A DNA stretch of 64,000 nucleotides from Euprymna scolopes (Eukaryota). Shown here in pieces: positions 4,586 to 53,316 of the stretch. Within the stretch, counting starts at the first letter, position 1, and every line of letters begins with the position of its first letter. Both the position numbers and the translations under genes were made by a program. The stretch is from assembly GCA_053919585.1 (NCBI GenBank), contig CM132813.1; one strand, given 5' to 3'. The notes below the pieces were generated by a model, which worked only from the letters and a program-made list of their open reading frames with translations, was not told the origin of the DNA and did no database searches.

Positions 4586-4779
4586 ATCGTACTTGGCCTT
4601 CGGGACAAGATCACAGTGTAGTATGTGTTCTTCGGATGCTGCACTTCAATTTCTTGTTCTCTGTCAGTGGACGAGAAATCCTTCACGACTGAGACACTTT
4701 TTGTTTTTGTTCCTTTTCTCTACGTTAAAAAACGACCTTGGTGTCTAACTCAGTCCCGTGGGGAGGCGTTGTAAATAGG
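4586..4779 (+). mobile_element. U2 snRNA-headed retroposon (SINE-like), full-length copy
   Basis: Begins ATCGtacttGGCCTTcgGGacAAGATCAcAGTGTAGTATgTGTTCTT (U2 5' end); flanked by 13-bp direct repeat aacgtattacaca (4573-4585, 4780-4792). Confidence 0.85.
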
Positions 4780-5223
4780 AACGTATTACACAAAACAAAA
4801 GTAAACAAGCTCTTACAATGAAACGATGTTAATGTTAATTAATTAAAAAAAAATTAAATAAACTCACTTAATCAAGAAGTTGTTGTCCAATTAACCAAAG
4901 AAAAATGCTTCCCTTATTTAAGAGAAAAAACAAAACAAAAAACAAACCGAACACTTTATCTTGTGCAGAATCTTTGAACGTTGTAATTTTTTTTTTGTTT
5001 TCAATACATTTGTACATAATAGTAGAAAAAAAAAGAAACTTTAATCAAAGACAGAAATGACTGATTACCTAAAATAAGGAAAAACAATTTTTTTTTTTTT
5101 TTTTTTTTTTACTTTCATTTAAAAAAATGACATCGATGGTTTAAATACGTCAAAATCTCCTTCAAAAGCGTTTTCTATTTCCGTTGTTTTGTGTACGTTA
5201 ATTATTATGCGCCTCAAATCATA

Positions 5224-6353
5224 CAGTAGCGTCCAAAAGTTAAGGAACGGTCGATCATTTTCTTCTAAAATGGCTTCTAACTTTATCTATGAAAAAGGGG
5301 AAACATTTTTTGGTGAATTTTCCAATGTTTAATAATGTTAGTAAAATATTTTTTTATTTATTTTTTTTTTTAATACATTTTAGTTTTTTTACATATAAAC
5401 AAATTTAAGGTGTCCAAAAGTTAAGGGACGGGGAAAATTATTAATGAAAAAAACAAAGAATCCTTTCAGTATTTAGTGAAAAGCCCCTTGTTTTCAATCA
5501 CCTTATGGCATCTTTTGCTGCAAGACAGAACTAATCGTTTACATGTTATAACGGAGATATTATTCCAGGATTTACTTATGCATTCCCATAAATCATCAAG
5601 ATTTGGGGGGGGGGGCGTCTGTGATCTTATCACCAATAATTTTCCAAACATTTTCAATTGGCTTAAGGTCGGATCTCTGAGCTGGCCAATCCATAACGCA
5701 AATATTGGATCTATTTAGCTCTTCTAAAACTATTTTTGCTTTATGGCACGGTGCGTTATCTTGCATAAAGATATCAGAATCAGAAAAATTAGGAACCACA
5801 TGTTCTCTAATCAATTCTCTGTACATTCGGGCATTTACTTTTCCATGAATCCTCACAAAGGGGCCAGTTCCTTTTGAATATATCATGCCCCATACCATTA
5901 TACTGCCCCCTTCAAATTTTACTGTACTTTTAACGCACTTAGGGGACAGTCTTTCTCCATTTTTTGTTCTGACATGTGGTCTTTTGTCTGATGCGAAAAG
6001 AGTGAATTTAGATTCATCACTAAAATTAATCTTATCCCACCCCCACCCCAAACAAATGTTTTTCAGCGAATAACAATCTGGCTTTTTTATTTTTAATAGA
6101 CATTAAAGGCTTTGAGCATGGACGTCTTGAAAATAATCAAACTTCGTTTAATCTTTGTGAGATCGTTTGTCTGGAAATATTTTGTCCAGTTTCGGATGTA
6201 AAATCTCGGGATATCGAAGCTGCAGTTTTAAAGCGATCAGAACGAGATGATCGAGTGATTTTTCTATCCTCCCTCTTAGTTGTTATTCGGGGTCGGCCAG
6301 ATTTTTTTCTTTTCAGTCAATGGTAAACCTTTTTTTATATATTTTCAATAACT

Positions 6354-6391
<38 letters not shown>

Positions 6392-6803
6392 AACGCTTTT
6401 AGACCTTTTCAATATTTTAGCAATCACCCCTATGGTTTATTTTAGTTTATTTTTTATTTTTTTTTTTTCATCATAATGGTCACAAATAAGCTGTTTTTCT
6501 TGGAGATATAGATTTTTCGAATATTCGGAGTCGACATTTTGTTAAGTTGTTATTAAAATTGCTAAAGTTTGTATTAATTTTCCCCGTTCCTTAACTTTTG
6601 GACGCCTGTAATTTAATTAAAATTATTTATATGTAAAAAAAAACTAATATGTATTCAAAATAAAAAAAATTATTTTTTATTTAACTACCATTATTAAACA
6701 TTGGAAATTTCACCAAAAAAATTGTTTTCCCGTTTTCATAGATAAAGTTAGAAGCCATTTAAAAGAAAATGATCGACCGTTCCTTAACTTTTGGACGCTA
6801 CTG
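5224..6803 (-). mobile_element. Tc1-family DNA transposon, IR/DR type, DD34E transposase disrupted
   Basis: TA|CAGTAGCGTCCAAAAGTTAAGGAACGG...CCGTTCCTTAACTTTTGGACGCTACTG|TA; ~210-bp TIRs each with an inner copy of the 20-mer; SDESKF, QDNAPCH and PIEN with 34-aa D-E spacing; frameshifts at a poly-G run (~5605) and poly-A/T expansions in the 5' half. Confidence 0.93.
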
Positions 6804-7403
6804 TACATTGAAAAATGAAACTACAGAATAGTAAAACAAAAAATATAAATAAAAACGTCATTCATAGCCAGAAACTGACAGTTTTAATACTTCAAAAAAG
6901 TTTTTATCATCTTGACACTGACTTATTATTATAAGGAAAAACAATTTTTTTTGTCTCATTTAACATTTCAGCGTCCCAAATTATATCTGCAAAATATACT
7001 TAGTTTTGCTATATTTATGCTGGTTATCTCCCTTAGATTTAATTATTCGCTGATAAGCGCCCCTTTTTTTTTTTATTTACTCTCCGTAAAAATCAGTGAA
7101 TTTTCAAAACACTTCCCACAAAGCTAAAAACGAGGGAAAAAATGAAACCGATTGTTATTTCTACGTATTTTAATATAAACAATGAAAACAGCACGATTTT
7201 TTAAAATTATCTCAAAATAAAATAATTGATCAATTTCGTTAATTTTTTTTACAGGCTTATTTTAAAATAAGCTGGACTATATATAAACTGAAATAAAAGA
7301 AGATACAAAAAAAAATTAAATGTTGATTACATTTGATTATCGTGAAAAAAAATGATTTCTCTCTTTTTTAAAATTTCGAGTTAGAATGCGTGCTAAAATC
7401 CTT

Positions 7404-8327
7404 GGTGTTTCTACACTTTATTGCCGAAATTGGAGATGCCATTTTTTTTTCAGGCACTTGCTGTCTAAATCCAGGGGAGACTCATTATATTGCCGAACGA
7501 TTGCTTCCGGAAAGGGAAAGAATAAATTTAACAAAATTAACATTTATTACTTCCGGAAACGTTAAATTAAACTAAAATTATCATTTATTACTTCCAGAAA
7601 CTTGGTAAAATGAATCTTGACAATTCAAAATGTTTAAAATTATTTATTTGTTCGAAAAAAAAAAAAAAAAAAAAACTATTTTATGAAAATCCAATGTTGC
7701 TTTCATTTCAAAATTGTTTTCTTAAAATTATATTTTTTCACGCAAACTTTTCAATGTTTTTACAATTATATTTCGATTCCAGTAAAAAAATAAAAAATAA
7801 AAAACAACCCACTTCCCCGTTAAAAAAATCATTTAAATTAATTTGTTGTTGTCCTTTCAAATTTGCTTTAATTAAAAAAAAAAAAAATGTATAAAATTAT
7901 TTATTGGTTCGAAAAAAAAAAAAAAAGAAAAAAGAAACACACACACAAACGAAAAAATAAACAAAAAAAAACTAATAAATGTTTTGCTTTTCAAATGGCG
8001 CTCTCGGCCAGTTTAAACTATTATGAATATGCCATTTCATTTTCTGTTTTTAATAATAAAAAAAAATGTTCTATGGAAAACTTTCCCGTTCTCATTAATT
8101 AAATTGAAACATTTCCAATTAAACAATTACAGATATATGCTCTCTTTCACTTTATTTACCTTTTTTTCATAGTTCTTTCCGGAAGTTTAATTTTTTTGTT
8201 ATTTATTTCATGCTTCGGCCATAGTTTGATATAATGATGTCTCCCCTGGATTTGGAAAGCAAGTGCGTCAAAAAAAAAAAAAAAAAAAATGGCGTCTCCA
8301 ATTTCGGCATTAAAGTGTAGAAGCACC
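7404..8327. mobile_element. Non-autonomous Merlin-like DNA transposon (MITE)
   Basis: TIRs GGTGTTTCTACACTTTATTGCCGAAATTGGAGA / TCTCCAATTTCGGCATTAAAGTGTAGAAGCACC extending ~90 bp; perfect 8-bp TSD aaatcctt; no ORF. Confidence 0.75.
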
Positions 8328-8887
8328 AAATCCTTAACTAATTAATATTACAAATCAAAAATTAAAAATGTAAACAAAAATAATAATGAATACATTAATT
8401 TCCATATTATCGTTACGCAGAGTGAGGGATCGATCTAGAATATTCCCTTCCACATTCCAAGGTTGCTTTACCTTCTCCATGGATAACTTGCATATTTTAT
8501 TATTATTATTGATTTATTTATTTATTGCATTATTTGTGATTATATTTTCAGTCTCAGCCTTGAAGACTAAAAAAAAAAAAAATATTTCGACACCAATTAT
8601 TTTTTTTAACGAAATCCAATGTCTGAAAGTAACGACAAATTTTGAAATAAAGTTACGCATGGTTTCCAAAATTTGAAAACCAACGGGTCAATAGAATATT
8701 ACATTTTCTGTCGTTTGGTAACAGGTTTTTTTATTTTATTTTTTGTCGATTTGCTTTTTATTTTTCTTGGGGGGGGGTCTATATTTTCTTGTTAACTACA
8801 AACTGCACGCTCAAAGAGTTTTCTTTAATTCGTTGCCAATTTGTTTAATGTTTTTAACCCAAAGTCAAATATAACAGACATGTAGAT

Positions 8888-9095
8888 AGAAGATTTACTG
8901 GCCTTCCCACAAGGGCAGTATTAGACACAAGGTTGGTTTTTAATATGGGGCAAAATTTACCTCCCCAACAAAGGCTTCTTACTCTTTATCAAGACAAAAA
9001 TAAAAAATTGTTTCAGTCTAGGATTTCTCCTTCACTGACCGAAGAAAAGAAAAGATTATGAAGTATAATATCAGAACATATATTACACAATTGCA
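8888..9095 (-). mobile_element. U2-headed retroposon, diverged copy
   Basis: Reverse complement reads tgtgtaatatatgttct...gtcagtgaaggagaaatcc...aattttttatttttgtc...accttgtgtctaatactgcccttgtgggaaggccagtaaat. Confidence 0.75.
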
Positions 9096-9267
9096 ATTTA
9101 AAAAGTCAGACACAAGGCCATCAAACGTATGGGAGTGTCGGTGATCATCATTTGACTATCCTTCTCTTGGTTTCAATCACCACAATACCACATTTACTCT
9201 ACAGGCCATCCTATTTACAATATCCCAATCACATTGAATTTGTATTTGCCAAAAATGTAAAGGTGAC

Positions 9268-9420
9268 TTTTTTTCTTTTTTTTTTTTTACATAGGCATCA
9301 CCACTTATCAAGGCCCAAAGGCCATTTGAGGATAAGGGTTAAAGTAGTTAATTGGACAATGTAGTAATCATTAGTAATGGAAATTTGGTAAATTTGTTAA
9401 CTAGTGGAACGGCTCATCAA
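9268..9420 (-). mobile_element. 3' tail fragment of the CR1/L2-group LINE family
   Basis: Matches 30807-30960, including poly(A) tail. Confidence 0.8.
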
Positions 9421-9760
9421 AATCCATTCTTTCACTGTGACCAAACAAATGAAGTCTCCTGTTTTGCACACAACACCCGATATAAACAGAATCAAATACC
9501 AACAGGTCATATGTGATGCTATTTGGGTTTAAGTTCTAAAAACTTTAACATCATGTTTAAATTAGGCACAAGACCATTAGAAGTGTAGGTCGTTTGTCAT
9601 CCTTTGTCTATGATAAACTATTTGAATATCTACTCTTAGAACCATTGCAAGCATCACAATACCACATTTACTTTAAAGAGTCATCTTACTTAACAACAAC
9701 CCCAATAACAAATAATGCACTCTGATTCTAGCTGTAGACAAAAGAAATTTGGATTCATAT

Positions 9761-12499: not shown

Positions 12500-12663
12500 C
12501 TATTTGTCTTCCCACGAGGGTAAAAATACAAACAACATTTTTTAAATTTTTTTTTTATTATGGTATACCCAACCCCTCTCCCTAAAAAGAGGAACATTCC
12601 AGATCAGGACAAAGATAAAATTGCCTAAGATGATTGCTTTTTCTCTCACCGACGCTACACTTT
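12500..12663 (-). mobile_element. U2-headed retroposon, diverged copy (head-to-head with next)
   Basis: Reverse complement reads aaagtgtagcgtcggtgag...caattttatctttgtcc...ccctcgtgggaagacaaata. Confidence 0.55.
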
Positions 12664-12711
12664 ATACTATTCAGAATACCAGAAAAAAAAAAATCTAGAT
12701 TTTTAATCTAT

Positions 12712-12935
12712 GATCAAAGTGTAGTATCTGTTCAGTCAGTGGGAGCCATTCTGCAAGGGATTACTTTCTCCTTTCGGAAGTGATGGGTTTATTTCTTTTG
12801 TTTGCAGTGTCCTCATTTACCAAGGTTATTGCTTTCTTTTTAGTAGAGGCAGGAGGAATGTTGGATATAAACCACTTAAAAAAAAAAAAATTGATCTTGT
12901 GTCTAACATTCGCCCTCGCGGGAAGGAACAGGTCT
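12712..12935 (+). mobile_element. U2-headed retroposon, diverged copy
   Basis: GATCAAAGTGTAGTATCTGTTC head (exact U2-type stretch); tail aaaaattgatcttgtgtctaacattcgccctcgcgggaagg. Confidence 0.7.
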
Positions 12936-13026
12936 CTCAAACCTTGGCACATAAAATTTTCGGTGAAAGTTGTAACTGCTTAAAGAATTTGCCGTACATC
13001 TACAACCTTCCATTAGGACACAAAAA

Positions 13027-13089
<63 letters not shown>

Positions 13090-13830: not shown

Positions 13831-16562
13831 AACCGTAGATCAGGGCTGTTGAAGTCATATTTAGTTTAATGTAAAAATATTTTTTTGTTTTGTTTTTTTT
13901 TTTTTAATGTATCTCCGCCTGTTCTTCTAACAAGGCTCTATGGACAAATTTATCTATAGTTAACCTTTGACAACTAAATATTTTCGTTTACTAGCCAAAT
14001 AAAAAAGTTACTAGCTAAACCCACATGATTTTTAGAATATGACATCTTCATTCTATGATGAGTATGTACATCAAAGATTTTTCTGTATTTTTTTTTTTAA
14101 TAGGTGTAATTCTAAATATACACCAAATTTTATGTTGATACGTGAACGTATAAATATTCAAATTTCCTCAGATGTTTTTTAAAACAGCCTTTGTTTAAAA
14201 AAAGTATACTGCTTTGTTAAATCTTTTATTGTTTAAAAATAGGACTTTGCTCGTTTTATGAAAAAAAAAAAGTTGAAAAGATTTTTCACTCATTAGTGAG
14301 CTTTGCAAGATTATCAGTGAAAGAAATACAATCGTCAAAAGATAAGCGTTTCATTATTTCTAGTCGCCACTTTGAAAAATCATTCGCAAATGCCACTTTC
14401 ACTCACAATGTAGAGCCCTATCTAATTTGCGAGAAGTTCAATGTTTTTGTTAAAAGCACATTATTTAGTTAGCATAGGCAGTTATTTTACTGATATTAAA
14501 TGCATTTCACATTTTATGGTTGCAATTAAATTGACACATATCTATTATTTAATGATGATTGCACAGACTTTAAAGTTATGTTTTTTTTTGTTTTAATTTT
14601 TATCATTTCAGCATCACTGCCAGAATCTTGTAGATGTCTCCGACTTTTTATTCACCGAAAATGTTCTTATCATTCTTAAGAATGACTCTTTCTCTTCATT
14701 TCTTTCTTATTTTTCACATTAAAACATTTTTGGGGCATAAAAAGTAAAAGTAAAAATTAATACAAAAACATTAAAAAAACAAAAAACAAACAAAAGTATG
14801 AAACGTAAACGATGAAGTTAAGCGCAGGAGTGGGGGAAAACGTACTGTTTGGGGAGGTGAGTATAAAGGGGGAGCAAAAAGCAAACGTAAAGTGAGAGGG
14901 GGCAAAGAGAATGAGAAAACAAACGGGAGAAAAACGAGTAAATGAACAAAACTTATTTCAAAAAGCAAAAGAAAAAATACATGAAGCTGGACTTTCAAAC
15001 AAAGGGTAATAACTCTTCTAGATTGAAGGTAAGAACTTAATAAAAAAATTAAAAAAAAAAAAACAGTGACTTATCAGCTTCTGTCAATCACTCACTTTTA
15101 TACCCAAAAAAGGATCCAAACAAACTTAGTATAGGAAGGGGAGGGATAGGGGTTCATTCTACACTATTAGACACCATAATGTTGTGTTCTCCAATTTGCA
15201 ATTTTCACAAAGATTAAAAAAAAAAAAAAAATATAGCAGTAAAACAAAATTTTAAAAAATGATGAAATTCACGAGGTAAAAAATTTCATTTCCCAAATCT
15301 GTTTTTCACTTCCCTTGAATTTGACAATAAAAAACATAAAAATATCGATTTTTACTCAAATTTTTTTTTTTTTTTATTAATTAAAAGAAAATAACTTTAG
15401 ATGGTTGTAGTTTACTTGAACCATTCTGCATGATTCTCGAATTTCGAGGAGCGTGAAAATGCAATGGTAATGGGTAGTGGATGAATTGAAAGACAGTCTG
15501 GGTGAAAAACGAGATAAGACATAATTAGAAAATACGGCTAACACACGGCATATACACAACATAAACTTAGTTTGAAAAGGGGATATTAACCTCAAAATAT
15601 TAGAAAAATAATTAGACACTGTATAAAACACGATAGATGAAGATGAAAATATAAAACAATGATTAGAAAATAAAAATTATAACATCAGTTTTTTTTTTTT
15701 TAATCCATTATCATCTCATTTTGCATCCAAACTTTTTTTTTCAATTCATCCGGTGCAGATAATTTTATTTTATCACAGCTTGTCTAACTTTGCATGTTTT
15801 TATAATAATTATGATTTCTAAACATTTGTAGGAGAGAGGTCCAATTATTTGCCATTTCATAAATTTCCGCTTTCTACAGCAACTTTAAAACACAATCGCA
15901 AGACATTAACTCAAGGGTTAAAAAAAAAAAAAAATTGTAATCATATTAAACCCAAAATATTGAAGAGATTTTAAATTTAACATCTGTCAGCTGCACAAAT
16001 TTATTTGCTGGTCCAGTTTGCCAATATCTGCATTTAATCAAGACATTTATGGAGTAAAATAGCAACGCACGTTTTTTTTTTTTGTTTTGTTTTCTCATTT
16101 TGGAGAGAAGAATACTTAATTTTTTTTATTTTCTTCAACTACGAAATGTTAACTTAGAAACAGATTGCTGTGCATTAAAAATTGCTAAGCACTATTTCAT
16201 TAATCACATAAGATTGTTAACATCGTAATTAGATATTCGTTAACAAAGTTGTCAATTCCAAGTTGTTCTAACTCAGCATTTGGTTTTAAAGTTTCTCTAA
16301 CTTTCTTTTATGTTCTCCTGCATTCGAGTAATGTCTGCATTTCCCTTGATATCACATGTGATTGAATAGGACTCGCCTCCGCACAAGGACAAAATTAAAT
16401 GCAGGCTTGGTTTTTCATGTGGACAAAATTCAGCTCACTTAAAAGAAGTACTTTGAATTAGGACGAAAAATTTAAATTACCTCAGTCTAGAGAGAGTTTT
16501 CTCCATTGACTGAGGATAGAAAAAGAAATGAAGTGCAGTATCATAAAACATACTATGCTTTT

Positions 16563-16758
16563 CTCCTACTCGGTAATCTGGGACAAGATCAAAGTGTAGT
16601 ATCTGCTCTTCAGATGCTGCATTTCAATTTCTTGTTCTCTGTCAGTGGAGGAGAAATCCTTCACGACTGAAACAATTTTTATTTTTGTCCCTTTTCTCCA
16701 CATTAAAAAACGACCCTGGTGTCTAACTGCCCCGTGGGAAGGCATTGTAAATAGGGAC
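16563..16758 (+). mobile_element. U2-headed retroposon copy
   Basis: ctcggtaatctgggacAAGATCAAAGTGTAGTATCTGcTCTT; body closely matches 4586-4779 and 47267-47447. Confidence 0.85.
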
Positions 16759-18277: not shown

Positions 18278-18637
18278 NNNNNNNNNNNNNNNNNNNNNNN
18301 NNNNNNNNNNNNNNNNNNNNNNNNNNNNNNNNNNNNNNNNNNNNNNNNNNNNNNNNNNNNNNNNNNNNNNNNNNNNNNNNNNNNNNNNNNNNNNNNNNNN
18401 NNNNNNNNNNNNNNNNNNNNNNNNNNNNNNNNNNNNNNNNNNNNNNNNNNNNNNNNNNNNNNNNNNNNNNNNNNNNNNNNNNNNNNNNNNNNNNNNNNNN
18501 NNNNNNNNNNNNNNNNNNNNNNNNNNNNNNNNNNNNNNNNNNNNNNNNNNNNNNNNNNNNNNNNNNNNNNNNNNNNNNNNNNNNNNNNNNNNNNNNNNNN
18601 NNNNNNNNNNNNNNNNNNNNNNNNNNNNNNNNNNNNN
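18278..18637. other. Assembly gap
   Basis: Run of N. Confidence 1.
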
Positions 18638-20571: not shown

Positions 20572-20623
<52 letters not shown>

Positions 20624-23497: not shown

Positions 23498-23782
23498 GAT
23501 GCCTCTGTATAGTTTCAAAAGACAATGGATACCTCCTGTAAAGGTAGCTGCGCGAGTAATTGTGAGGCAATCCCTAACCACACCTATTCCGAATGTGCAC
23601 TGTTGGAGTCCAGTGGCAAAGTGAAGTGCTAGACAACTGGAAACAATGCCAAGATAAGCAGAGAGCACATACTGCACCTGGAATTCCTAAATGGGCATAC
23701 ATTTTAGTACTGACCAGGCTCAAAGTTGCTTAATTTTGGTGATCTAATGGGAACCAGTGTGTCGATGTGATTGTGCCATATA
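23498..23782 (-). mobile_element. 5S rRNA-derived SINE (SINE3), family A
   Basis: Reverse complement of 23670-23780 aligns to 5S rRNA (GATCACC.AA.TTAAGCAAC..GAGCCTGGTCAGTACT...GGAATTCCAGGTGC); 12-bp TSD taaacaagcacc; body shared with 28207-28494. Confidence 0.85.
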
Positions 23783-23958
23783 TAAACAAGCACCAACATT
23801 TATGAAACTGGATATAAGATAAACTTCATAATAATATATTACATTTGTTCATTGCGACTACCATCATATGTAGTCGTGAGAATGACAAAACATTCCATAA
23901 AGCAAAAATGATGTAAATACGAAAATAGATTATTTTCAGTCAGTACCTTCTCTATCTC

Positions 23959-28029: not shown

Positions 28030-28494
28030 CTGCAAAAGAAAACAAGTCAGAGGTTAATGACAAAGAACATTCATTTGCTTTAAAAATAAATGAAACAAAA
28101 ACGTTTAGTTTGAGAATTTTTTAGATGAGGATCAATAATTTGTATCTTTTCGACTATTGCTCTCATCATTGATTACAGACAAAGTCACAATTAAAAAAAC
28201 AACAAACGCCACTGTTCAGTTTCGAAAGAGGACAGGTATTCCCTGTAGAGGTGGTTGGATGTGTAATTGTGAGGTAAGGGTTGCACAATCTCCAGCCACA
28301 CCTGCCCTTAATCAGCACTGCTTGGTCCAGTGGTAAGGAGAAGTCCAGGACAACTGGAAACAATGCCGAGATAAGCAGAGAGCACATACAGCACCTGGAA
28401 TTCCAAAATGGTCACCCATTTTAGTACTGACCCGGCTCAATATTGCTTAACTTTGGTAATCTGACAGGAACCGGTGTGTCAACATTATGCCATA

Positions 28495-28536
<42 letters not shown>

Positions 28537-35600: not shown

Positions 35601-38600
35601 AATGTCCGATATGTTTTATTTTAAATGTTAGTTGACATTTTTCTTTCATAAATTGGGCTACTTGTACAAACCTAATGAGTCGTTTATGAAATTCTGCAAT
35701 GGAATATGAGCCGGAGTTTTGCATTCCTGGTTGACTGCAAATGACCGTCTGGTAACCTCTGCAGAAAAAGAGAGAGAGAGAAAGAGAAGAAAGAGAATTT
35801 TAAATATATATGCAAAATACTAAATGCATATTTTATAAAGAATAACATGGTAAACTCTTAAGACACTCTTAACCTTTTGTCTAGGAGCAATGTGTAGTAT
35901 CTGTTTTAATATTATATTCATCGTTTTTGTCTTCAGTGAAAGAGCAAATTATTCTTGAATAAAAGAATTTTTATTTTTGTCCCATTCCAGAAATTTTCCC
36001 CACATTCAAAACCGACCTTGCGTCTTAATCTGCCCTTGTGGCATGTAAATAACGAACGTGTTAGGAAAATAAGAAACATAAAATTTTGAATAAAATCCGT
36101 TAACTCCCAGAACTTAAATGATCTGTTTCGGACTGCTTCCTTTTTCACAAAGAGGTATTTAATTTAAAATACTGATTTATTCAACTATTCAAGATGTATT
36201 AAACTCATGAAATACTGAACATGTTGTCTTTACCAAGACTGAATGGTTGAAGGTGTTATTGGAAATATTATTTCATAAAAGAATGACAGATATGAACAGG
36301 GTTAGGGTTTAGCGTTAGGGTCATAAAATATGCTTAAATATATTTTAATCCATGCAGATTTCATAATTATAAACCAATTCTCTATTGTTCCAAAGTTTAA
36401 AAAAAAAAAAAAAAATGACTTTGGCATCATCAGCTAACATTAAATATAAAACATTTAGCACTCCAGCCGTGTCTCCTAACGACGTGGCTATTGAGAGATA
36501 GGGAAGAAAGATTTAATATTAAACAACTTGATGAAATTTATTGAATTTGGGCATGTGCAAAAAAATGTTTAAAAATGTCGATAAGTTGAAATGAACATTT
36601 TGCATTTCAAGTTGCCGATATATGTCTGCACATATTATTTATCCATCCAAACAAAGATTTCACTCGTTATAAATCATCCTTGATGTATAATTACTATTTC
36701 TTGTTAATTCGTGTTATGTGACCAGTAGTTGAAGAATTTATAAGTTAAATATTTTAACATAGACGCACATACATCTACTGTATTATTTATAAATATCACA
36801 TCTCTGAATGATCCTGGCATAACTAATTAAAATAATTTATTCATCAACAGTCATCTTCCAGGATGATACACTGAATCCAATGTTTCAGTAATTCAGTGGC
36901 TTTTCATAGAACAATCAAATTACATGGTACTAACAAGGAGACCTGACATTGCCTGGAATTGAATGATGATCAACGAATCTTTCACACTCCCATATTTTTT
37001 ATTGTTACTGAAATCGACCATTTTTCAATTAAATCGATTGATTGCCTGCTCTAGTTGGGGACCCATTCCACACAGTGACTTAGTTCACAATATATTGTAC
37101 TCTACATGCACTGTAGAGAACCTACTGTCGATTTTAGAAAAAATCTTTTATATAAAAATGTCTGGAATTAAAGTTTAAAACGCTTCAGTTTATTATGCTT
37201 CACTTGTGCCCTAAACAGAAACATTCATTTCAAATGTGCCCCTGTCATATCAAAGAACCTACTATTGATTTTATATGCCTGGCCTTACTGCTTGTATGGT
37301 GATAATAGCTTAAATTTAAGTTTAAAATAAAAAGTTAAGTATCATGGTGCAATTATGGTTTAAATAGAAACATTCATTTCAAATGCACCTCTGTCATATC
37401 AAAGAACCTACTGTTGGTTTTATACATCAGGTCTTTCGGTTTGTGTGGCAATAAAACTTCTCAAATGCACTTGTGGTGTTAGGCTGTGTAAGGTTTGATC
37501 AAAATCGCCTGTTCTTTCTTTCATCAAATTATTTCAATTATGGATCATCGATACTTATCAAAGACCTTCCGATAGAAAAACTATCTAAGAACACTGCCAT
37601 GCACATAAACTCCATGTGAAATTTCATAAAAATCAACTTAGCCATTTTGGAGTCCATAGAGAACGAACACACACACAAAGTTCTTTTTATATAATAGCAG
37701 AGATAGAAATGATTTTCATTATGTTGTCTTTACCAAGACTGAATGGTTGAAGGTGTTATTGGAAATATTATTTCATAAAAGAATGACAGATATGAAACCC
37801 AGGTGTGTGGAGGGAGGGATCAGCAGAAAAAAGAAAACGGAAATGTGGAATTTAAATGTTACTTGCACACATTCAAAGTGCCAATCTCATTATAATACAG
37901 TATGAACAGAGATTCTTCCAGAAATTTGGGCCATCATACTCCTACCTCAATTCACTTTTGTGCACAACCAATGCAAAACAGGAAAGTGTCACACAAATTA
38001 GCAAAACATTTTCCCCAGTGTAATATGTGCAGGAGTTCCTTCCAAAATTGAGCTCATTATTGAAACCATTTTTATGGATAGAGAAGATTTATACACATTT
38101 TTGTTCACAGGTTATTTCAACATAAAATGAATAGTTGGTTCTACTTATAAATTATTCCCAAATTTTATCAAACTGGAGCAGTTGATTAAGAAATAATTCA
38201 AGCAATTGCAAGAGTATTTTGGTTTCGATAAGTTCTTTCCAGTGCTTTTTAGAAGTGTTGGTTGAATAGGAGTTCTTCTTGCAGTTTGGATCATCATTAT
38301 GACCTTATTACAGCTACAAGATATTTAGATCTTTATTCAGAATTCCTTCTATATTAAAAAACAAAAATAAAGAAAACTATGTATGATGTACGTGCATGTG
38401 ACAAAACCAAAACTATATCATATTCCAAAAATCATATAAATTGATCAAATAGTTTTATTTCTAAATAAGAAAATCAAATTTTATGAGTAACAGGAGTGAC
38501 TGTCTTGTATCTCCATTTTGAAAATCTCATGAAACAGATAACTCAACAATAATTCAAACTTGCAAGATTTTTGTTGTAATGCCTACAAACTTGCATTAAT

Positions 38601-41600
38601 TGCTTAAAAATGATTTTCTTTATAAAAATAAAACTACTTGATCAATTTAGTGATTTTTGGAATGCGTTATGGTGTTTAGTAAGATAGTGTTGACAGATCG
38701 ATTTTTTAAGTGTGTAGTTTTAAGTGAAAACAACAGTACTTACTTGTCATGTCGAAAATAGTAATATATCCAAATATTATGAAAATTCATCAAGTGGAAC
38801 AACTGCTATTGTGTTTTAAGTTAAAAAAAAAAAATCTATCACTATGGCCCACACACCCCTAAAAATATGTCAGCACTTTAAGTTGTGATAAGGGAGATAA
38901 GTATATACTGTATTCGCAATCATCAAGGTGTTTACATCTGAGGAAATGCAACCTGCCCCTCCCATTTTCCATAAAAATTACCTTTACCTATAAATAATTT
39001 TCTATTCAATGAATTTTTGTAACTATTTTTCGACACACTTAAGTATTGTTGTTTTTGTTTAAAATTAGATATTTAACAAAAAAAAAAAAAAAAAAAAAAA
39101 AAATCGATCCGTCAACTATCTTAACAAGCACATACAATATTTTTGTTTTGCCATGCGTATGTACATTAGATTTTTTTTTTTCTTTAATTTATTTTTTTGT
39201 GCTTTTAATACATAAGTGAATTCTGGACAAGAACCAGTATTTATCTACATTTCTGTTTACTGCACAAGTTGACTGGTGAAAGGATGTAATAAAAGGCGAG
39301 AGGGAGGGATAGACGTGTGGTTTACTGGTTGTTACTCACTTTTCTCGAATCGCTTCAGCAAAGAAGTAATCCTCTGCCAGGTACTTTCCAAACGCTGACA
39401 TGCCTCCAGCCTGGTCAATCAGGTCTTTCCTCATCAGGCACGACATACCTGTGGTGCAGTTGATGCCTATAGAATTTGCACTCAAATACACCCGAGACTG
39501 CTGAGTGCCAAAAAAAACCTGAAAAAAGAAAAAAAAAATCATTTAGAGAAGTCAGAATAAGTTTTACCAAACAGGAAAAATTTTTTTTAATTTTTTAAAA
39601 CTATTGTCCATCTTCAACAAGGTATATTGCCACTTGCACACAAGCAACTACTATTTGGGATCATGTTTAAGAAACTGTGGAGAGTTGAGCAGCAAGATGC
39701 CTGTTCACATTACATTTAAATTTCTGTATGTTAGTACTGTCAGGAAAGCAGGAAACTGTCCGCTGAGGAAAAAAAAAACTATTAGAGTAGAAGACTTTCT
39801 GGCATCTAGGGATATCAATAGTGAAGAGGGTCTAATTCATAGTAGTTCATTATGTCTCAATAGCAATGTGCCTTTTTTGGAGTAAACTAAAGTAAAAAGA
39901 AAATAAACAAGCCAAGCATGCGGGGTACACCTCCACGAGTGAAAAATTCACTTTCACTATGACTAATGATTGCACAAAATTTTTTTTTTAATTCAAAGAG
40001 TGGTTATTAAAAAAAAGTGCAAATAAACAAACGGACAAACAATTTTAGGGCAATTTTGCTCCTATAATGGCCTCTTGCAGGGCAACCAGAGTTATCCCGG
40101 AAAATCCATTCTGGAAAAAATTTACTTTCACCATGACTAATGTTTGTGCAAAATTTTTTTTTTTTAAATCCAACGCATGGATATTGATAAAAGTGCAAAC
40201 AAACGAACGGACGAATGGGTGTGAATTACTAGATCCAATCCCTCCTCTGTGCGGGGACCAATTAAAAATTAAAATTTTTAAAAAGCAGAGGGGGAGAGGT
40301 AAGAAGAGGAAGGTGCTATTTAATAAAATACTGACCTGATGGGTCAGAATTTATTTTGTTCAAAGTTAAAATTACCTTTTCATAGACAGAAGCAAATCCC
40401 TTTCTGTTACAGCAGTAAGGCATTTGATGAACCAAGCCAACTTTTTCTGTGAGGGCAGATACCATATCTAATAAGGTGTCTGGGTTCACTAGAACAAATG
40501 AATTGAAAAAAAAAAAAAAATGATCAACAAAAATAAAAAATGAATAAATCAACAACTAAAATAATATTTTTTTATATGAATAAATACAGTTTTGATATGT
40601 TTTAAACTTGTCTTCATTTGGGTTAATATGTTTCCACTATTGTATTCTCTGCTTACGTTCTAAAGACATCTTTTTGAATATAAAGCTACCAACATTTATT
40701 CACCAAGGTAGAGATGGTGGCAACATAGTAGTTTCAGAACTACCAGACTAAACATTAAGTTTCTTTAATGAAGATAGGGGTTGTAGAGTACTTAATTCAA
40801 CAGGCCTCATATCCCACATATTCTGACACTGCTGGTATCAAAGATTAACTGAATTTTCAATGTATATTTCTACCTAAAATATATTAAAAAGATTGTGTTT
40901 TTAGTGCTTTTTTTTTTTTTTTTTTAGTTAATTTCAAAAGAAATTCAAAACTAGTCCTTCTACAACTGTTCAAAGTCAATTTATTNNNNNNNNNNNNNNN
41001 NNNNNNNNNNNNNNNNNNNNNNNNNNNNNNNNNNNNNNNNNNNNNNNNNNNNNNNNNNNNNNNNNNNNNNNNNNNNNNNNNNNNNNNNNNNNNNNNNNNN
41101 NNNNNNNNNNNNNNNNNNNNNNNNNNNNNNNNATTCACTCATAAACCAATTAACCGATTATGAGTTTTGGAACATAGCTAATAGATATAAAGTGTCTCAA
41201 ATGTAGGCTATATTTAGCTTCATTGACTTCTATACAAAGGAGGTAAAAAGGGGTGGAACCCCCTTATGAAAAGTATGATACCAACGATTTTTGTGAAATT
41301 TTACCAATAGATATTAAACATCAATAAATCTTTCAAATTTCAGTTTCTTTTAACTATTTTTAAAGGTAATAATATAGGCACAACATTTCATTTGGAAGTC
41401 GAAATATTTCAGATTTGTATTGAATTTTACCTATAATCATTAAGCAAGATTTGATGAATTTCAAATTTTCTTAAAATCCTTTAAATGTAAGCCTTAAATT
41501 TGAAACATTTTCAAAAATGAAATCCTATAATGAATTTGGATTAAAAATTGGTTTGGTTGTTTTGTTTTACGGCATATCAACCCTTTTCAGGTTAATTAAT

Positions 41601-44600: not shown

Positions 44601-47600
44601 AGGTTTGTTTGAATGAGAGAGTGAGATTGGCTCTGCACCAGCCAGCTTCACTTTAAACAAACTCCCAGCGAGAGTCATCTATCATCAAACTGATTAATAT
44701 GGATTCTATCTTGGGTGGGTTATAGACTACGGTTACGTCTTAGAAATATGCTATGACATACACTGGTGGTTAAGATGGTATAACTGTTGGAAACATAAAA
44801 ACTTTAATAGTGACTGAAATGATTGCTAATGAAAACAATATATTTACACATTTCTGAAGAATTGGAAGTTATTTATGAGTAAATTGTTTATTTTTTTCTT
44901 TCTGTGTTTGTACAGGCTTCATACAAATTTTCAATAATCTGTTTCCAAGGACTTTTCCAGACAAAAGTCAAGTTTTATAAACAAAATTTGATATATAAGT
45001 AATCATATAATAACGCTAAAAATTATAATTAAAAAAATATTTTAACAGTATTTCGAGTTGGCATTTCACTTCGGCTTTATCAATAAGGTATATGGATAAA
45101 ATTGGGTAGTTTCCTGATAAAGGGGCATAACTCTTGTATTGACACTCCCGGGAATATGATGCCATTTCAGAAGAATGTATTTGTTTAATATTTTTAAAAT
45201 ATTTTAATAGTATTTCGATTCTAATTTTAATATTCAAATTTTTATTGGACATCAAGAATACGATTAAGCCCTGTTCAAGGAGTTTTTCATATTTTCAAGG
45301 CCTTTTCAAGGTAATAATATAAATAAGATCTTTTCAAAATAAAGCTCATAGTTCAAGGCCTTTACAAGCCAGTGCAAACCTCGTATTATGTGTGTGACAG
45401 TGTAATGGACTTCAATGTGCGTGCATGCGTGCAGCCTTTGTCAGTGTGTATATATGAGCAAGTTGAGACTAATCATTCTCTTTTTCTAACCTTGAAAGCT
45501 AACTGAACGTAATAGTGTGTTGACTTGTTTTGTTTTGAGCTCTACTGTGCGAAATCCTGATCCTTTTATGCTGTGCAATTGGATAAAATAGTAAACTTGA
45601 TTTCGGTTGAGAAAAGCAATTTTCACCTGCAAACATATTTTCACGTACTCCGATCTCTTGCTACCATTAAAAACATTCCAAACGTTAGATTTTTTTGACC
45701 TCTCATACGAATGGCTTTGTTAAAAATAGAATTGTGAGAAAAAGTGAGAAAAAAAGGTTATTAGTGACTCACCAATGAACAACTTGCTGTCATGTTTTGG
45801 ATATTTAGCGAGAAGGCTTTTCACAACGAAAATCGCTGGATCCTGATCGTGGGCAACACAGAAAAGGATTTCATACTGCAAAGAGAAGAAAATAAAAAAA
45901 GAGTTCAAAAGAAATGTAAAATTTCCATATAAACAAAACTTTAAGTGAACATCAAACGAACTGTTAGCACTTATCATTTCCAACAAACGCATACTTGGTT
46001 TCGCTGGTGAGCAATCAAAAAGTAATCAATTATTAAAAGTCTTTTTTACATGTGCATGGCCATCACTTTTTCCCTGTACAAGGATTTTCAAGGTTCATAC
46101 ACATTTTCAAAGTTTTTCAAAGCCTTCTCCAGACAAAATTCAAGTTTTCAAAACAAAATTTGGGGTTTGTTTTATAATCCACAGTGATTTGAAAAAATGG
46201 TAAAAAAATCAAGTATACAACAAGTAAATGTTATTATAGCTAATAAAAGTTACTTTGCAACCTACTTACCTTTTGGTATTTTAAAGTAGTTTTAAATGCT
46301 ATTAACTCTCTATACAGCTTTTAAATTTCCAACCAAGATGGCTGCCATCTTGTCCATTTTTTTTTTTGGCTCAGACGGCCTCATTTCAATTATCACAATT
46401 TTGGAAGAGGGGGGGGGTCACTATCAGAGAGTATCGTGCGTGCAAGGAAAGTGGGGGCATAGGGGGTACTATGGCGGCCACAACCACTCCTCCACCTTGT
46501 ACTCCCATACAAAAACAAAAAAAATTAAATTATAAATGAGAATAAAAATAGAAGATTTGAATCCCCCCTCCCCCAAAAAAAAAGAAACCAGAAAAAAAAT
46601 TTTGCTAATTGAAAACAATGGAAAAAATGAAGTTACACCCCTTTCTCATGAAACTACCCAATGTAGCTTTGTGATAAAAGAACTTAACTCTTGTATCCAC
46701 AATACTATGCAATTTCAGACCAATGTATTTCAATTCTATTTTCAATATTTTGCCTAATTTCCAAATTTAATAATTTGATTTTATGTTCAGTAAAAATTTG
46801 TTGAAATAACAAATTTTTATTGAACATAAAAAATACAATTTTCAAGGCTTTAAGAAATTTTCAAGACATTTTCCATATTTTCAAGGATTTTTCAAGGTAA
46901 TAATAGAAATAAGGCCTTTTCAAGGCAAAAATAATAATTCATGGACTTTTCAAATCTGTGTGAATCCGGCTACATGGTTGTGTCATCCAGTGGCTGTTGA
47001 TGGGTTGTTTAAGCAAATAAAACTAATGCATGGAGGCACAATGAAAACATGTAGCAGTTTCAAAGGTTTTAATTGGGGGAGAGAAGTTTGTTTACAAGAG
47101 GAGAGATTAAAAGAGGCTAAAATTAATTCCTTCTTAATTTTCTTACTTAAACTTGGAATGGTTGACAGACAGTCTCAGAAATATTCACTTCAATTTTACT
47201 TTTGCCAATTAATAGAGGTTTCAGTGGATCTACATTTGGGAATCCAAACAATACAATCATACACACTCGGGTTCAGATCAAAGTGTAGTATCTGTTCTTC
47301 AGATACTGCATTTCAATTTCTTGTTCTCTGTCCGTGTAGGAGAAATCCTTCACGACTGAGACAATTTTTATTTTTGTTCCTTTTCTCCACGTTAAAAAAC
47401 GACCCTGGTGTCTAACTCTGTCCCGTGGGGAGGCATAGTAAATAGGAACAACCATACACACGCAAACACACACTAGTCATTATTATAGAATTTAAAGGAT
47501 ATAATTTATACCCACACAATCCAGATTTGTGAAAAAAGAAAAAATCTTATTAACAACCTTTAATATAGACGTAGTTTCTTTGTTTCTATAGCTCTCTCCA

Positions 47601-48377
47601 AATAAAAAGCAGTGTTTTTACCTGTAATAGCAAGGGAGATAATTCAGTATATATGCAAGTAAACACGAGCACCAATCAACAGCAGCTAGATAAAGTATTA
47701 ACATTGTTTCCAAACAAAACAATTATTTCTTCCAAGTAACTTTCATTTTATAAAAAATTTTTAAAATATCTATCTTTGCGCCTATAATTTTTTTGCGCAT
47801 TGATATTCATATTAAAAACTCTTTTTCTATTTATTTAAAAAGAAAATACAACTTTGTTATATATGGATTGTGGAATTGCATTAATCTGCAAAAGATCTAG
47901 CTAATTTGCATATTCTTTTAAAACATTTATTTTAATTAATTCCCTATTAGTTTTTTCGGGGTTTTTTATGGGATGATCATCTTTAGTTTATTATTATGCG
48001 TACTTATATTCATGCAGAAAAACTAATTTCTATATATATATATTTATGTATGCGTATATATTTTTGTTTAAAAAAATTTTGCCTTCCAAGCTCCTGTTAG
48101 CTTTTGGTCTACAGACATGAAACTTAATATATAATCTGCATTAATCAAAATATCATATTTAAGCATATTTTATGACTGAGCAATGCTGGGTAGCCTGCTA
48201 CTATAAATATAGAACTTTGTGGATCTTGCTTCTTGTCTTCAACAATCCGGTGATTCTATCTTTTATAAAAGGAATGACAGGTGAATTTACATGTATATGT
48301 GTGTGGTTGAGAGGCTAAGGAATAAGGGTGGAGAGTTTTATGCTTTGGTTTCGATTCTAACTGATGGCACCAAAGTC

Positions 48378-48408
<31 letters not shown>

Positions 48409-49734
48409 CTTTGATCTCACTACCATATATTGGGTTCATATATATATACGAGGGGGGTGCAATAAGTAATGTCCCTGACCCACTTCCCATAGCAGTAGAG
48501 CAACAAAACTTGGCACAGTTATTAGTCTTTCTCTACATAGGAACCATACAGAGTTGTGCATTTCTCCCATCGTTTGATGCAGCTCTGGAGACCATTTTTG
48601 TAGAACACCCCAGGTTGGTCCTCCAACCATGACATGACTTCAGAAATCAAGGCTGCATCATCTGGGAAACGCTTTCCTTTCAAAAACAACTTCATGGCTG
48701 GAAAGAGGTGAAAGTCAGAGGGCGCAAGGTCAGGAGAGTAGGGAGGATGGGTTATGATTTCATAACCACACGCCCGTGCTTCTGATCTGGCAACATGAGA
48801 GTTGTGGACCGGAGCGTTGTCCTGCAGGAGGAGGGTACCTTTGCTAATCTTGCCCCGCCTCTTGATTTTGATAGCTTCCCTTAATTTCCTCAAAAGTGAA
48901 GCATAATAGGCTCCTGTAATTGTGGTACCCTTTGCCAGGAAATCTCTCATCACTACTCTGTCCTGGTCCCAGAAGACTTTGAGCATGACCTTGCCAGCGG
49001 AGGGCTGCACCCTTGCCTTCTTTGAAGGTGGTGAGTCCAAGTGCTTCCACTGCATTGACTGGGCTTTGGTCTCTGGATCATAGTGATGGATCCAGGTTTC
49101 ATTCTGTATAATCAGTCTTCTGAAAAACTTTGACTCATCTTCTTGGCACATCTCCAAATTCATCTTCGAGCACTCGGCGTGTTCTCGCTTCTGAAATGGT
49201 ATGAGCAACCTGGGAATCCATCTGGCAGACACCTTAAGCATATGCAAATGGTCATGAATGATAGTTTCCACAGACCCTGTACTAATCTTGATATCTTGGG
49301 CTATTTGGCGAATAGTAATGCGCCGATCTTCCAAAATGGCAGGCTCAACTTGACGGACAGATGCTTCATCAATGGCAGAAGAGGTGCGACCAGGTCTGGG
49401 AGCTGTTTCCACAGACTTCCAGCCATGTTTGAATTCACAATGTCAGCATTTTACAAGGTCATATGATGGGGCATTATCACCATAAGTTTCTTTCATTTCA
49501 TCAAAAGTCTCCTGTGGTGTGCGTCCTTTATAATACAAAAACAGGATCAGTGCCCAATATTCAACAGGCTCCATTTCACACCTGACTCAGTTCAAATACC
49601 TGTAAAACAGAAACCACAATTAGTTCAGAGCTGTAATTTGCCACATAACCCATAGAGATATAAATCATTGTACATACAAAATTTCAGCTAGATCAGACCA
49701 CTGGAAGTGGGTCAGGGGCATTACTTATTGCATG

Positions 49735-49814
<80 letters not shown>

Positions 49815-52800
49815 GGGCTTTACATCTTTGAAAACATTTCATAAGGTTAATTTGAAAAATCTTTGAAAACCAATAAACGTTTATTAAATGATTAGAAACA
49901 ATTTTTTTCTGAGATTTGCAGTGTAATACACATTTTGATAAAGACTTTCGGTTTTTTTTTTTCATTTTTTTTTTTTTTTCATTTTTTTGGAAGTATTAAT
50001 CTTGAGATGTCAGTCCCTCAGGGACAGAAAAAAAAGCATATGTCCAGTGTTGTTGATGTGTACATGCATAGTTTGGCAAGAATTTTAAATAAGAGTTCGA
50101 TCACATGTTTGAAAGCATTTTGTAAGCTAAATTTGAAAATATTAGAAATTACAAAATGTTTTCAAAGATGTGATGAAACTTCCATTTAAAGCACGAATAT
50201 ACACATCAATTTCAAACTTGCAACCATCAACATCGGACATATCCTTCTCTATCTCACTCTGAGTGTCCGACCTCCCCCCCAGGGTTAATACCACCAGAAA
50301 CATGAAGAGGAAAAAATTAAAAAAACTAAGCCTTTACTGAAGGTGTTAGAAAAAAATTTTTTTTTTTTTTAATTATTTTAATTTAATAAAATATTTCATA
50401 GAATTTTTTTGGTTTTCTAATATTTTCAAATTAACTTTACAAAATGTTTTCAAAGATGTTTATGCCAAACGACATTTATAATATACACAACTTCAATCTT
50501 ACAACTACTGTTAACAACAGCGAACATATCCTTTCCTTTCTCTCGAGGATGGGCTGACCCTCAGTGTTAATACCATCAGAAAAATGAAGAGAAAAAAAAC
50601 AAAGGAAAGATAACTAAAAAAAAAAAAAAACCAACAGAATTTTTTTAAAATGGTGTATTACAAGTCTCAGAAATTTAAGAAAAAAAAAAAACATTGAATA
50701 AAATATTTTTCAATTTTTTAATATTTTCATATTAATCTATATACTATAAAGTTTTTTGGTTTTTTTTTTTTTTTTTTTTTTCGCTCTGACATTAATATTA
50801 AAAACCAATGTGTTTTTATTTAACAATTTCTAAAACAAATTTCTTAATATATCAAGCCATGAATATTTGAGTAAGTTCAAAGAAGGTTAACTAATTTGCA
50901 TATTCCTTTGAAAAATGAGTGTTCATTAATTATTCATTTTCCTTATTTCTTACTAAATAATTTCATTTCACTACCACACCTAATTTTGTTTATCTATAGT
51001 TTCTATATTGAGCACTAGTGAGTAGAATTTAGGATAAAAACGTTCTAGCACACGGACCTGTTTTTATATAAGTGGCCTTGTCTGCATATGCCAAAATTCT
51101 CTACCAAACTCCTCTTTAAATATTAAGTCTAGAGACTTGAATCTTGATATATAGGGTATTTAGACCATGGGAACACTTTGATTTGGTTTTTAGCCTGTAG
51201 AAATAGCTGTTATTGGGTCCAAATTTAAAACAAAACAATTGACCTTGGCAGAAGTAAATAGACTAACTTCTGAGCATGCATACATATACATTTTTTTAGC
51301 TGGAAATCGTTTAAGTTTTAGCCTTCTTTTATCCGCCTGATAATAGCTTGGAGGGTAACAACAAAAGCTGAAGCGCTAAATAACAATTAAGGCTGGAGCA
51401 CTGAAAGTTTTGATTCTAGCTGTTGGCACCAAAGTATTTTTTCTTTTTAAAACTTTTAAAACAATGACAATATATATTGGTACAATATAATAATCAATAA
51501 AGAATTTGCTCACTAATAATAAATACAAAATCTGCATAAATTAAAATAACATATTTAAGCATATTTTATGTCTGGCCAATGCTGGGTAGCTTGCTAGTTT
51601 TCAGAATTTTGTATTCAGATATAAATATTAATAACACAAAATCCATTTAGATAGCTCGATAGTGCAATACTAGAGCTCTAAAAACTTTAATATACTGCTT
51701 CACTGCAAACAGATAAACATTTTTATACTCATCTCCAAACCGGTCCAGTTTTATTTACTGTAGTAAATAAATCTNNNNNNNNNNNNNNNNNNNNNNNNNN
51801 NNNNNNNNNNNNNNNNNNNNNNNNNNNNNNNNNNNNNNNNNNNNNNNNNNNNNNNNNNNNNNNNNNNNNNNNNNNNNNNNNNNNNNNNNNNNNNNNNNNN
51901 NNNNNNNNNNNNNNNNNNNNNNNNNNNNNNNNNNNNNNNNNNNNNNNNNNNNNNNNNNNNNNNNNNNNNNNNNNNNNNNNNNNNNNNNNNNNNNNNNNNN
52001 NNNNNNNNNNNNNNNNNNNNNNNNNNNNNNNNNNNNNNNNNNNNNNNNNNNNNNNNNNNNNNNNNNNNNNNNNNNNNNNNNNNNNNNNNNNNNNNNNNNN
52101 NNNNNNNNNNNNNNNNNNNNNNNNNNNNNNNNNNNNNNNNNNNNNNNNNNNNNNNNNNNNNNNNNNNNNNNNNNNNNNNNNNNNNNNNNNNNNNNNNNNN
52201 NNNNNNNNNNNNNNNNNNNNNNNNNNNNNNNNNNNNNNNNNNNNNNNNNNNNNNNNNNNNNNNNNNNNNNNNNNNNNNNNNNNNNNNNNNNNNNNNNNNC
52301 CGCATGGACACACAGCTAAGTCTAAAACTATTCAACTAAAACATGATACACACTCTACAAGAAACGGCCTTTACTACTGATGTGGCTTGCATATTATTTT
52401 AACCAATTTCAATTAACGATTGCACTGCTCGCCTTTTTAATTATATAACAACGGCAAGAAAAGATCAGTTTCAGCGTCTGCCATTTCCTCCATTCATCGG
52501 TGGAATTCTTTTGAGGCGACACACCTCAAAACACGGCGCACCAAATATGCATGGGGTTAAGGAGGTGGCGAGTGACGTCCTACATGCAGCCATTCCTTCA
52601 GGCTCGATTTCAGACTCTGCCTTTAGACACGATAAATAATTAAAAGGAGTGTTGTTCTCAAATACAAACAATGACGTCTTTTGCCACTGACCCCTAAGTC
52701 TAGGGATTAGCCTTCAGGCAGGGATCAGAGGATAGTACCTGTTTCCAGTTAGTTCAAGTTAGAGAGCTTTTTCTAGACTGAGATAGGTTTTATTTTTATT

Positions 52801-53316
52801 CCAATACTTAATTTTAAGTTGGTTTTTCCTTCCATTACAAGATAAACAAAAAAACTTATATTTAATTTGACTCTCACAGACATTGGGAAAGCAGATAAGT
52901 AGGATTCTTTCGGATTATAATCAAAGCAAAGTATCTGTTCTGTTCTTGGTAAGATGAGGAGTGTTCTGAAGTTAAGACAATTTCTAAAATAAATTTTGTC
53001 ATAATCCAAACTAAGCTGGATTTGATCTACATTAAAAACTAAACTCGTGTCTAATACTGGTTTAGTCAAAAGGCAAGTAAATAATTACTAATATATAAGT
53101 ATTTGATCTAAAAAAAAACTAAGAAAAAAAAACTCACAAAGTTGGTATATTTTTGATCAACACTGCCCTGTATTATTAACATAAAAAAAAAATTATTCTT
53201 TAGAGGTCAACTGAGCACGGTTCTGCCAGAGAAGGTCGGTTTTTTTTTTTTTTCAGTGTTATGTACAAATTTGGAAAGAAAATGTAGACTCATTACTCGG
53301 AAAATCTGATATACAA

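Follow-up and report, generated by a model that had tools for sequence, protein, structure and literature searches.

Short interspersed elements (SINEs) with heads derived from small nuclear RNAs (snRNAs) have been described as SINEU-1 to SINEU-3, which are crocodilian families, were not found outside crocodilians and all carry polyA tails; crocodilian long interspersed elements (LINEs) of the Tx1 type near Keno carry the same snRNA heads (Kojima 2015, PMC4494074). Here we report on a stretch of 64,000 nucleotides from Euprymna scolopes (assembly GCA_053919585.1, contig CM132813.1), called the window below, which holds repeats of a short element that we name family A. Analysis of the window and of the whole assembly confirmed that these are repeats of a real and very abundant short mobile element whose head was copied from the U2 snRNA of the host. 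We consider it probable that family A is a non-autonomous retroposon without long terminal repeats, of the SINEU kind, and that its head is the captured landing-site flank of LINEs that home to U2. In the literature searched there was no report of U2-headed SINEs or of U2-homing elements in molluscs, and SINEU appeared there as crocodilian only.

LINEs specific for ribosomal DNA, R2 among them, are transcribed together with the target, and their RNAs bear target sequence at the ends, which gives precise junctions. Among the LINEs directed to U2, Keno is presented in the passages cited as a U2-specific member of the Tx1 clade in vertebrates, lancelet and hydra (PMC4494074, PMC4640811), and Utopia is a U2-targeting LINE of the NeSL clade with a restriction-like endonuclease, reptile families of which make duplications of 20 bp (Kojima and Jurka 2015, PMC4640811). 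Molluscs have SINEs of another kind: the Ceph-SINEs of squids and cuttlefish combine a common Ceph-domain (motif CCTTGGGAAAG) with a tail derived from RTE elements, at least as they are summarized in a later article (Akasaki 2010, cited in PMC5786205). Family A resembles them in being a mollusc SINE, possibly from the same group of animals, and differs in that its consensus is without the motif CCTTGGGAAAG and its head derives from U2.

The assembly searched comprises 5.9 Gb in 925 contigs. With the copy at 4587 of the window as query, 3,225 candidates on many contigs were obtained at a first look, and the 40 that were scored were 93-95% identical. In the genome, an exact 23-letter word of the non-U2 body has 20,398 matches, against 0 for the reversed control, and the true copy number is higher, since copies that diverge by about 5% keep this word only in part of the cases. 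Family A copies were present on every large contig sampled and lie between 5% and 30% away from the consensus. Thirty genomic copies show an element of about 193 bp that begins with ACCG and finishes with ...AAATAGG; there is no polyA, and the 3' end directly abuts the target site duplication (TSD). Clear TSDs (9-21 bp, with a threshold of 9 bp) were found in 17 of these 30 copies and nearly always start with AAC, which therefore belongs to the target; overall, family A TSDs measure 7-21 bp. The family spreads by target-primed reverse transcription into ordinary AAC-starting sites. The element was also seen at high depth, with the same consensus letters, in sequencing runs of at least three further organism labels; the run labels include 'mollusc metagenome'. 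Two copies (L005 and L011) have about 9-11 letters upstream of the head as well as internal changes in common; judged from their letters they would form a subfamily with a 5' extension, that is, one whose master was transcribed from its flank, and short 5' extensions on some copies are also a feature of SINEU (compare SINEU-2). A reading of the window made from sequence only had proposed a retroposon family whose copies combine a U2-derived head with a body unlike U2 and a shared tail, high in copy number and long-lived. The profile search described below, the 20,398 word matches and the TSDs bear out the first part of this proposal, the spread of divergence bears out the second, and the presence of copies on every large contig sampled shows that the family is dispersed and not restricted to one locus.

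To delimit the head, family A was aligned with the U2 genes of the host, which were located by pattern search. On the Rfam U2 model these score 180.9 bits as dispersed identical copies and 161 bits as members of a tandem array with a period of 764 bp; a variant type is present in addition. The array (L047) occupies about 168,867,000-168,891,000 of contig C9, the third, variant type carries GATCGCG, and the regions upstream of the U2 types are mutually unrelated. The alignment of family A with host U2 is confined to letters 1-48, and beyond letter 48 nothing is alike. The head therefore consists of roughly the first 47-48 letters of U2, namely stem-loop I, which is kept in altered form, and the stretch that pairs with the branch point. 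It has the extra A of the host's U2 (GATCAAAGTG, where the Rfam consensus has GATCAAGTG), and full-length copies start with ACCG in register with U2 +1. With the Rfam U2 model the element aligns end to end, which is the one point in favour of regarding the copies as ordinary processed pseudogenes of U2 or as a chance likeness; this alignment reaches 17.4 bits, the gathering score being 46, and all of its score comes from letters 1-47. Set against the 161-181 bits of the host genes, the divergence past letter 48 and the 20,398 body words, that explanation has a negligible probability and was ruled out. At the gathering score, Rfam found no U2 in the whole window and only two 5S-like matches. 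The element is thus not a full-length copy of U2, and its independent origin, which had also been proposed, is likely given that the head has the extra A of the host lineage and that there is no polyA tail, the crocodilian SINEU having been compared by description only.

Copies in the window were found with a profile built from the 30 genomic copies and then aligned pairwise to the family consensus. This analysis led to the identification of three young family A copies, about 5% off the consensus (94.9-95.6% identical, Kimura distance about 0.05), and of at least six diverged older relatives at distances of 0.14-0.30. The young full-length copy at 4587-4779 (+, 94.9% identical) is made up of the U2-derived head (4587-4633), a post-head inverted repeat (to about 4650), a hairpin with a T-rich stretch (4655-4716) and the tail (4722-4779). 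Read directly, its TSD is exact, 14 bp long and begins with AAC (4573-4586 = 4780-4793). Contigs of other sequencing runs connect 4576 to 4787 without the element, which corresponds to the empty site, and loose ends of raw reads pile up at 4779 and 4782, at the 3' boundary of the family, and near 4592, at its 5' edge, with flanks that vary from read to read. The DNA at 4300-4450, upstream of this copy, is itself a high-copy repeat with very high contig depth in all DNA runs used. Both other young copies are truncated at the 5' end. The one at 47267-47446 (+, 95.6% identical) begins at consensus position 14 and has a directly read TSD of 13 bp with one mismatch (47254-47266 / 47449-47461). The other, at 16580-16755 (+, 95.5% identical), begins at about position 15 and stands head to head with an older, diverged copy that contains insertions (16374-16581, -, 79% identical, profile E 6e-13); no TSD was found for it. 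The further old copies are a member of a related subfamily in which about 45 bp are inserted ahead of the tail (8894-9101, -, 87% identical, profile E 6e-15), a diverged copy in which head, body and tail are each recognisable (35863-36057, +, 79% identical, profile E 3e-12), a partial copy with head and body that has lost its tail (52707-52808, +, 75% identical, profile E 7e-5) and, 111 bp past the latter, a very diverged and weak copy (52919-53059, +, E 0.35 with the whole model and 0.054 with the head). The segment 12711-12926 (+) is a relative in which U2 head letters 23-44 are joined to a different body and a related tail (12887-12926).

An independent count with a 19-letter U2 word, allowing up to 3 mismatches, gave 5 occurrences in the window where 0.05 are expected. 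Two gaps between neighbouring copies in the window measure 14 and 111 bp; simulation gave p about 0.04 for this clustering, which is no more than suggestive. Assembly gaps at 18278-18637, 40986-41132 and 51775-52299 overlap no copy, the nearest copy being 408 bp off, and affect only the density per 64 kb. Most of the copies listed in the sequence-only reading were recovered by profile and alignment; two had been overlooked (16374-16581(-) and 52707-52808(+)), and one, placed at 12500(-), was picked up by no search and amounts to about 50 letters that look tail-like by eye. The TSDs that had been claimed for the 4586 and 47267 copies, at 13 and 14 bp, do exist, with the lengths of 14 bp and of 13 bp with one mismatch given above. 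As for the claim that the 4586 copy starts at U2 +1, the family consensus ACCG is indeed in register with ATCG at U2 +1, and the first A of this copy could equally be TSD.

The same genome harbours a LINE of the L1 group that homes to U2 and has the same leader. This 7.1-kb element, at locus L049, has open reading frames (ORFs) of 975 and 1,169 amino acids. The second, ORF2, contains the Pfam domains Exo_endo_phos (an apurinic/apyrimidinic endonuclease, APE), RVT_1 (the reverse transcriptase, RT) and zf-RVT; among relatives of solved structure, human L1 ORF2p comes closest to it (E 2e-64; R2, E 4e-24). At least 40 genome copies have a 100% identical intact ORF2, several of them in arrays that repeat about every 7,126 bp, which suggests that the LINE is young and active. 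It starts with the U2 leader in the variant of the SINE (GACAAG, not GCTAAG), and its 3' end, ...TTTAATATC, lies directly against U2 letter 27/28, from where U2 continues 100% identical to the functional type. The exact 30-letter junction of LINE and U2 27/28 occurs 4,145 times in the genome (control 0), and of the four LINE 3' ends contained in loci chosen for other reasons, three (L049, L026 and L034) lie against letter 27/28, either in a U2 or in a U2 head. In having APE and RT, in its L1-group affinity and in its U2 site specificity this LINE is a candidate member of the Tx1 clade close to Keno. Just upstream of the leader, L049 8720-8860(-) is coding-like with paired cysteines and unlike U2; it is possibly a fragment of a zinc-finger gene. 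Relatives of ORF2 with 46-60% identity were found in other organisms (L051, from an ENA assembly, and L052, from a TARA metagenome scaffold). The same 22-letter word stands on either side of L051, and the contig of L052 wraps onto itself; it is probable that these relatives have different homing targets and that they too occur in arrays. Neither the U2 leader nor the family A tail was found in the ORF2 relatives L051-L053.

The heads of family A are themselves landing pads. Sequencing reads revealed a second junction inside the family A head at 4626, where a tail ending in ...GCAAATAAATACC is followed by ATCTGTTC, which starts at head letter 39; the junction is present in RNA and DNA reads of two species. 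We refer to the element with this tail as the sister SINE. The junction between its tail and head letter 39 (38/39), together with a post-head word of the A/B type, occurs 6,181 times in the genome (control 0). In the first 35 Mb of contig C1 it is found in 16 out of 91 family A copies, about one in six, as counted through the fixed offset of 65 letters between the match lists of the junction and of the body word. At locus L048 a stack consists of letters 1-38 of an A-type head, three units with the sister tail and two family A units, each from letter 39. Because the leftmost head is the A-type variant, these units were inserted successively into one original head instead of being duplicated together. 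Families A and B can be aligned from end to end, the tails of families A and C contain a common module, and the tail of family C has an exact 14-letter word in common with the 3' untranslated region (UTR) of the LINE. Family C (about 250 bp) and a further U2-headed family, D, were observed at L034 1380-2480(-), L023 2390-2700(+) and L026; they occur as head-to-tail stacks and as 5'-truncated units, and some of their tails precede a complete head, not letter 39. In the window, 12560-12710 had the look of the 3' end of a LINE inserted into the head at 12711; this was rejected, since local alignment was no better than with shuffled sequence.

Directly after the head, families A, B, C and D and the L049 LINE all carry an inverted copy of U2 letters 31-43 (for example 4615-4650 and 47281-47313 in the window and 8660-8698(-) in L049). 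In the predicted RNA of the element the stretch that pairs with the branch point is locked in a hairpin of 9-14 bp, whereas the same stretch is single-stranded in real U2. Further downstream, window positions 4655-4716 and the same part of other copies would form a GAAA-loop hairpin, after which comes AATTTTTATTTTTG, which resembles an Sm site, and this T-rich stretch (AUUUUUG) is kept in old subfamilies and in family B. Folding of the whole RNA is better than that of shuffled sequence (z -3.75 for family A and -5.7 for family B). By eye, the hairpin ahead of the T-rich stretch has changes on both sides between A and B; RNAalifold did not recover this middle hairpin.

As to transcription, the best matches of family A to the A-box and B-box of RNA polymerase III (Pol III) promoters show 3 and 4 mismatches, a level that shuffled sequence reaches as well, the element contains two T5 runs, and Rfam detected no likeness to tRNA, 5S or 7SL in it. 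With no boxes above shuffled sequence, two internal T5 runs and U2 as the only Rfam likeness, a classical Pol III SINE with a tRNA, 7SL or 5S head was rejected. In polyA RNA the element has a depth of about 1,000-1,300, similar in both read directions, and 88% of the mapped reads continue into unlike flanks. There was no pile of read starts and no discrete transcript of the element in this library, which would miss a short RNA without polyA; the pattern is one of passive read-through of embedded copies. No common promoter motif could be built from the regions upstream of the U2 genes, the loci being too different. The doubt expressed at the outset about what transcribes the element stands, and polyA RNA shows the element only embedded in other transcripts.

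Family A is close to SINEU in many respects: both are short non-coding retroposons (below 500 bp, family A having 193 bp) that are flanked by TSDs and have a head from the 5' end of U2, both have internal T runs and no Pol III promoter, and both coexist with LINEs of the same genome that carry the same snRNA head. They differ in that family A has no polyA tail and ends in ...AAATAGG against the TSD, in that this tail stands among related 3' ends (it matches that of family C, which in turn has the word in common with the LINE 3' UTR), and in that the host is a mollusc, whose extra A in U2 is found in the head, and fixed letters of the heads serve as landing pads. The L049 LINE resembles Keno as an APE-type element with a fixed insertion place in U2 sequence; it has APE, RT and a C-terminal zinc domain, and L1 ORF2p as nearest solved relative. 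It differs from Keno in its 3' flank at U2 letter 27/28 and in that most targets here are heads of other elements, not U2 genes. The site of Utopia and Keno (letter 39 in Phytophthora numbering) corresponds approximately to the 38/39 of the sister SINE. Utopia, for its part, has a precise 3' junction in U2 and occasional tandem insertions, and its 20 bp duplication has the size implied here by letters 28-47; it has a restriction-like endonuclease, unlike the APE of the L049 LINE.

A capture of the landing-site flank, which we regard as the probable origin of the head, would have proceeded as follows. An element inside a U2 gene would be transcribed from U2 +1 by the external promoter of the gene, so that its RNA would begin with U2 letters 1-47. 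This leader would then be copied along with the element, and the head would consist of the upstream flank of the target plus the duplication. Family A would be a branch that left U2 for AAC sites by using a separate partner LINE, and its tens of thousands of heads would serve as extra landing pads for its U2-homing relatives. Such a dependence on the promoter of the target gene, which is the model inferred here for acquisition of the leader, recalls R2-type elements. R2, however, frees its own 5' end by means of a ribozyme and carries no target sequence to new places, whereas the elements studied here take the target flank along, and it creates new targets. Several observations weigh against this proposal. 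Genome-wide, the sister tail forms 0 junctions with true U2. The 3' end of family A, likewise genome-wide, forms 0 junctions with true U2 and 1 with head letter 39, and a sample of 30 copies contained not one that lies in a head; family A is therefore not U2-homing itself, though it is a target for U2-homing relatives. Upstream of the L049 leader lies non-U2 DNA, and the 5' junction shows no intact target. No LINE with the family A tail was found in the 234 kb of genomic sequence searched, and the likeness of this tail to the L049 LINE is indirect, through a general pattern of 3' ends and the link via family C. Nor was any promoter-bearing family A master copy, or a master locus behind a U2 promoter, found. 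Finally, a single template switch onto U2 RNA in a common ancestor, passed on to every family, would produce an identical boundary; template switching is the first of the other explanations to be weighed.

Template switching onto snRNA is a known mechanism, from human U6-L1 chimeras. Applied to family A, it would mean that the enzyme of a LINE jumped from the element RNA onto U2 snRNA at the end of reverse transcription and that the chimera became a master. U2 RNA is abundant in the nucleus, and a switch of this type is the favoured published model for SINEU (PMC4494074). Arbitrary internal entry points in U2 would be expected from it, but the leader ends at U2 letter 46-48 in the LINE and in every SINE family examined. 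This boundary lies 20 letters past the LINE site 27/28 and 9 past the sister site 38/39, which is the layout to be expected of a target flank plus duplication, and the LINE itself homes to U2. On these grounds we think a template switch unlikely. Alternatively, family A could be an internally deleted LINE, similar to Bov-A or HAL1, in which the leader and 5' hairpin of the U2-homing LINE became joined to its 3' UTR. The GACAAG variant of the leader, the post-head hairpin and the general pattern of the 3' end are common to family A and the L049 LINE. The 14-letter word of the LINE 3' UTR, however, is found in family C and not in family A, the family A consensus does not significantly match the 7.1-kb LINE outside head letters 18-45, and family A has another exact 3' end and another target (AAC sites) than the L049 LINE. 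A deletion origin is conceivable but doubtful.

A further explanation concerns what the RNA does: the element could be an snRNA mimic, expressed from an snRNA-type promoter of RNA polymerase II (Pol II) and, by virtue of its U2 5' end, GAAA-loop hairpin and Sm-like site, provided with a cap, associated with Sm proteins and subject to re-import as U2 is. The persistence of the Sm-site-like stretch in old subfamilies and family B, the better-than-shuffled folding of both RNAs with the two-sided hairpin changes seen by eye, and the start of the copies at U2 +1 are consistent with this. Against it stand the missing middle hairpin in RNAalifold, the want of a promoter-bearing master, the differences among loci in the regions upstream of U2 and the absence of a discrete RNA, the last in a polyA library alone. 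We hold it to be rather improbable. The capture of a landing-site flank by U2-homing LINEs remains the origin of the head that we favour.

The window contains repeats of other kinds. Two segments resemble 5S ribosomal RNA (23666-23783(-) and 28383-28503(-), with 63 and 55 bits on Rfam 5S), and the same non-5S body follows both, downstream to about 23330 and 28190, so that on sequence they look like a 5S-headed SINE of the SINE3 type rather than 5S genes. Remnants of DNA transposases of the mariner/Tc1 type lie at 48522-49412(-) and 5596-6051(-) (Pfam Transposase_1 and DDE_3). No LINE ORF was found in the window, its larger ORFs being such transposase remnants or without a Pfam match.

SINEs with snRNA heads have so far been known from one paper and one animal order. 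The genome analysed here offers a larger and younger system, with tens of thousands of SINE copies and a LINE that has identical intact copies and the same leader. What is new is the link to a U2-homing LINE and the use of the heads as landing pads. Since thousands of exact junctions map the landing sites to single letters, capture of the flank is directly testable. According to the cuttlefish genome paper (PMC13218726), published annotations of decapod cephalopod genomes contain almost no SINEs, and families like A are probably sitting among the 'unclassified' repeats of these animals. More tentatively, and with the odds against it, a flank leader (U2 letters 1-47), carried by the LINE and by several SINE families, may let a site-specific LINE escape the scarcity of its target, each copy planting a new pad, and the RNA of the SINE may in addition be an snRNA mimic that combines the 5' end of U2 with an Sm-like site and with snRNA-type expression by Pol II. 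If true, this would be a new route for the production of SINEs and for their entry into the nucleus without a Pol III promoter.

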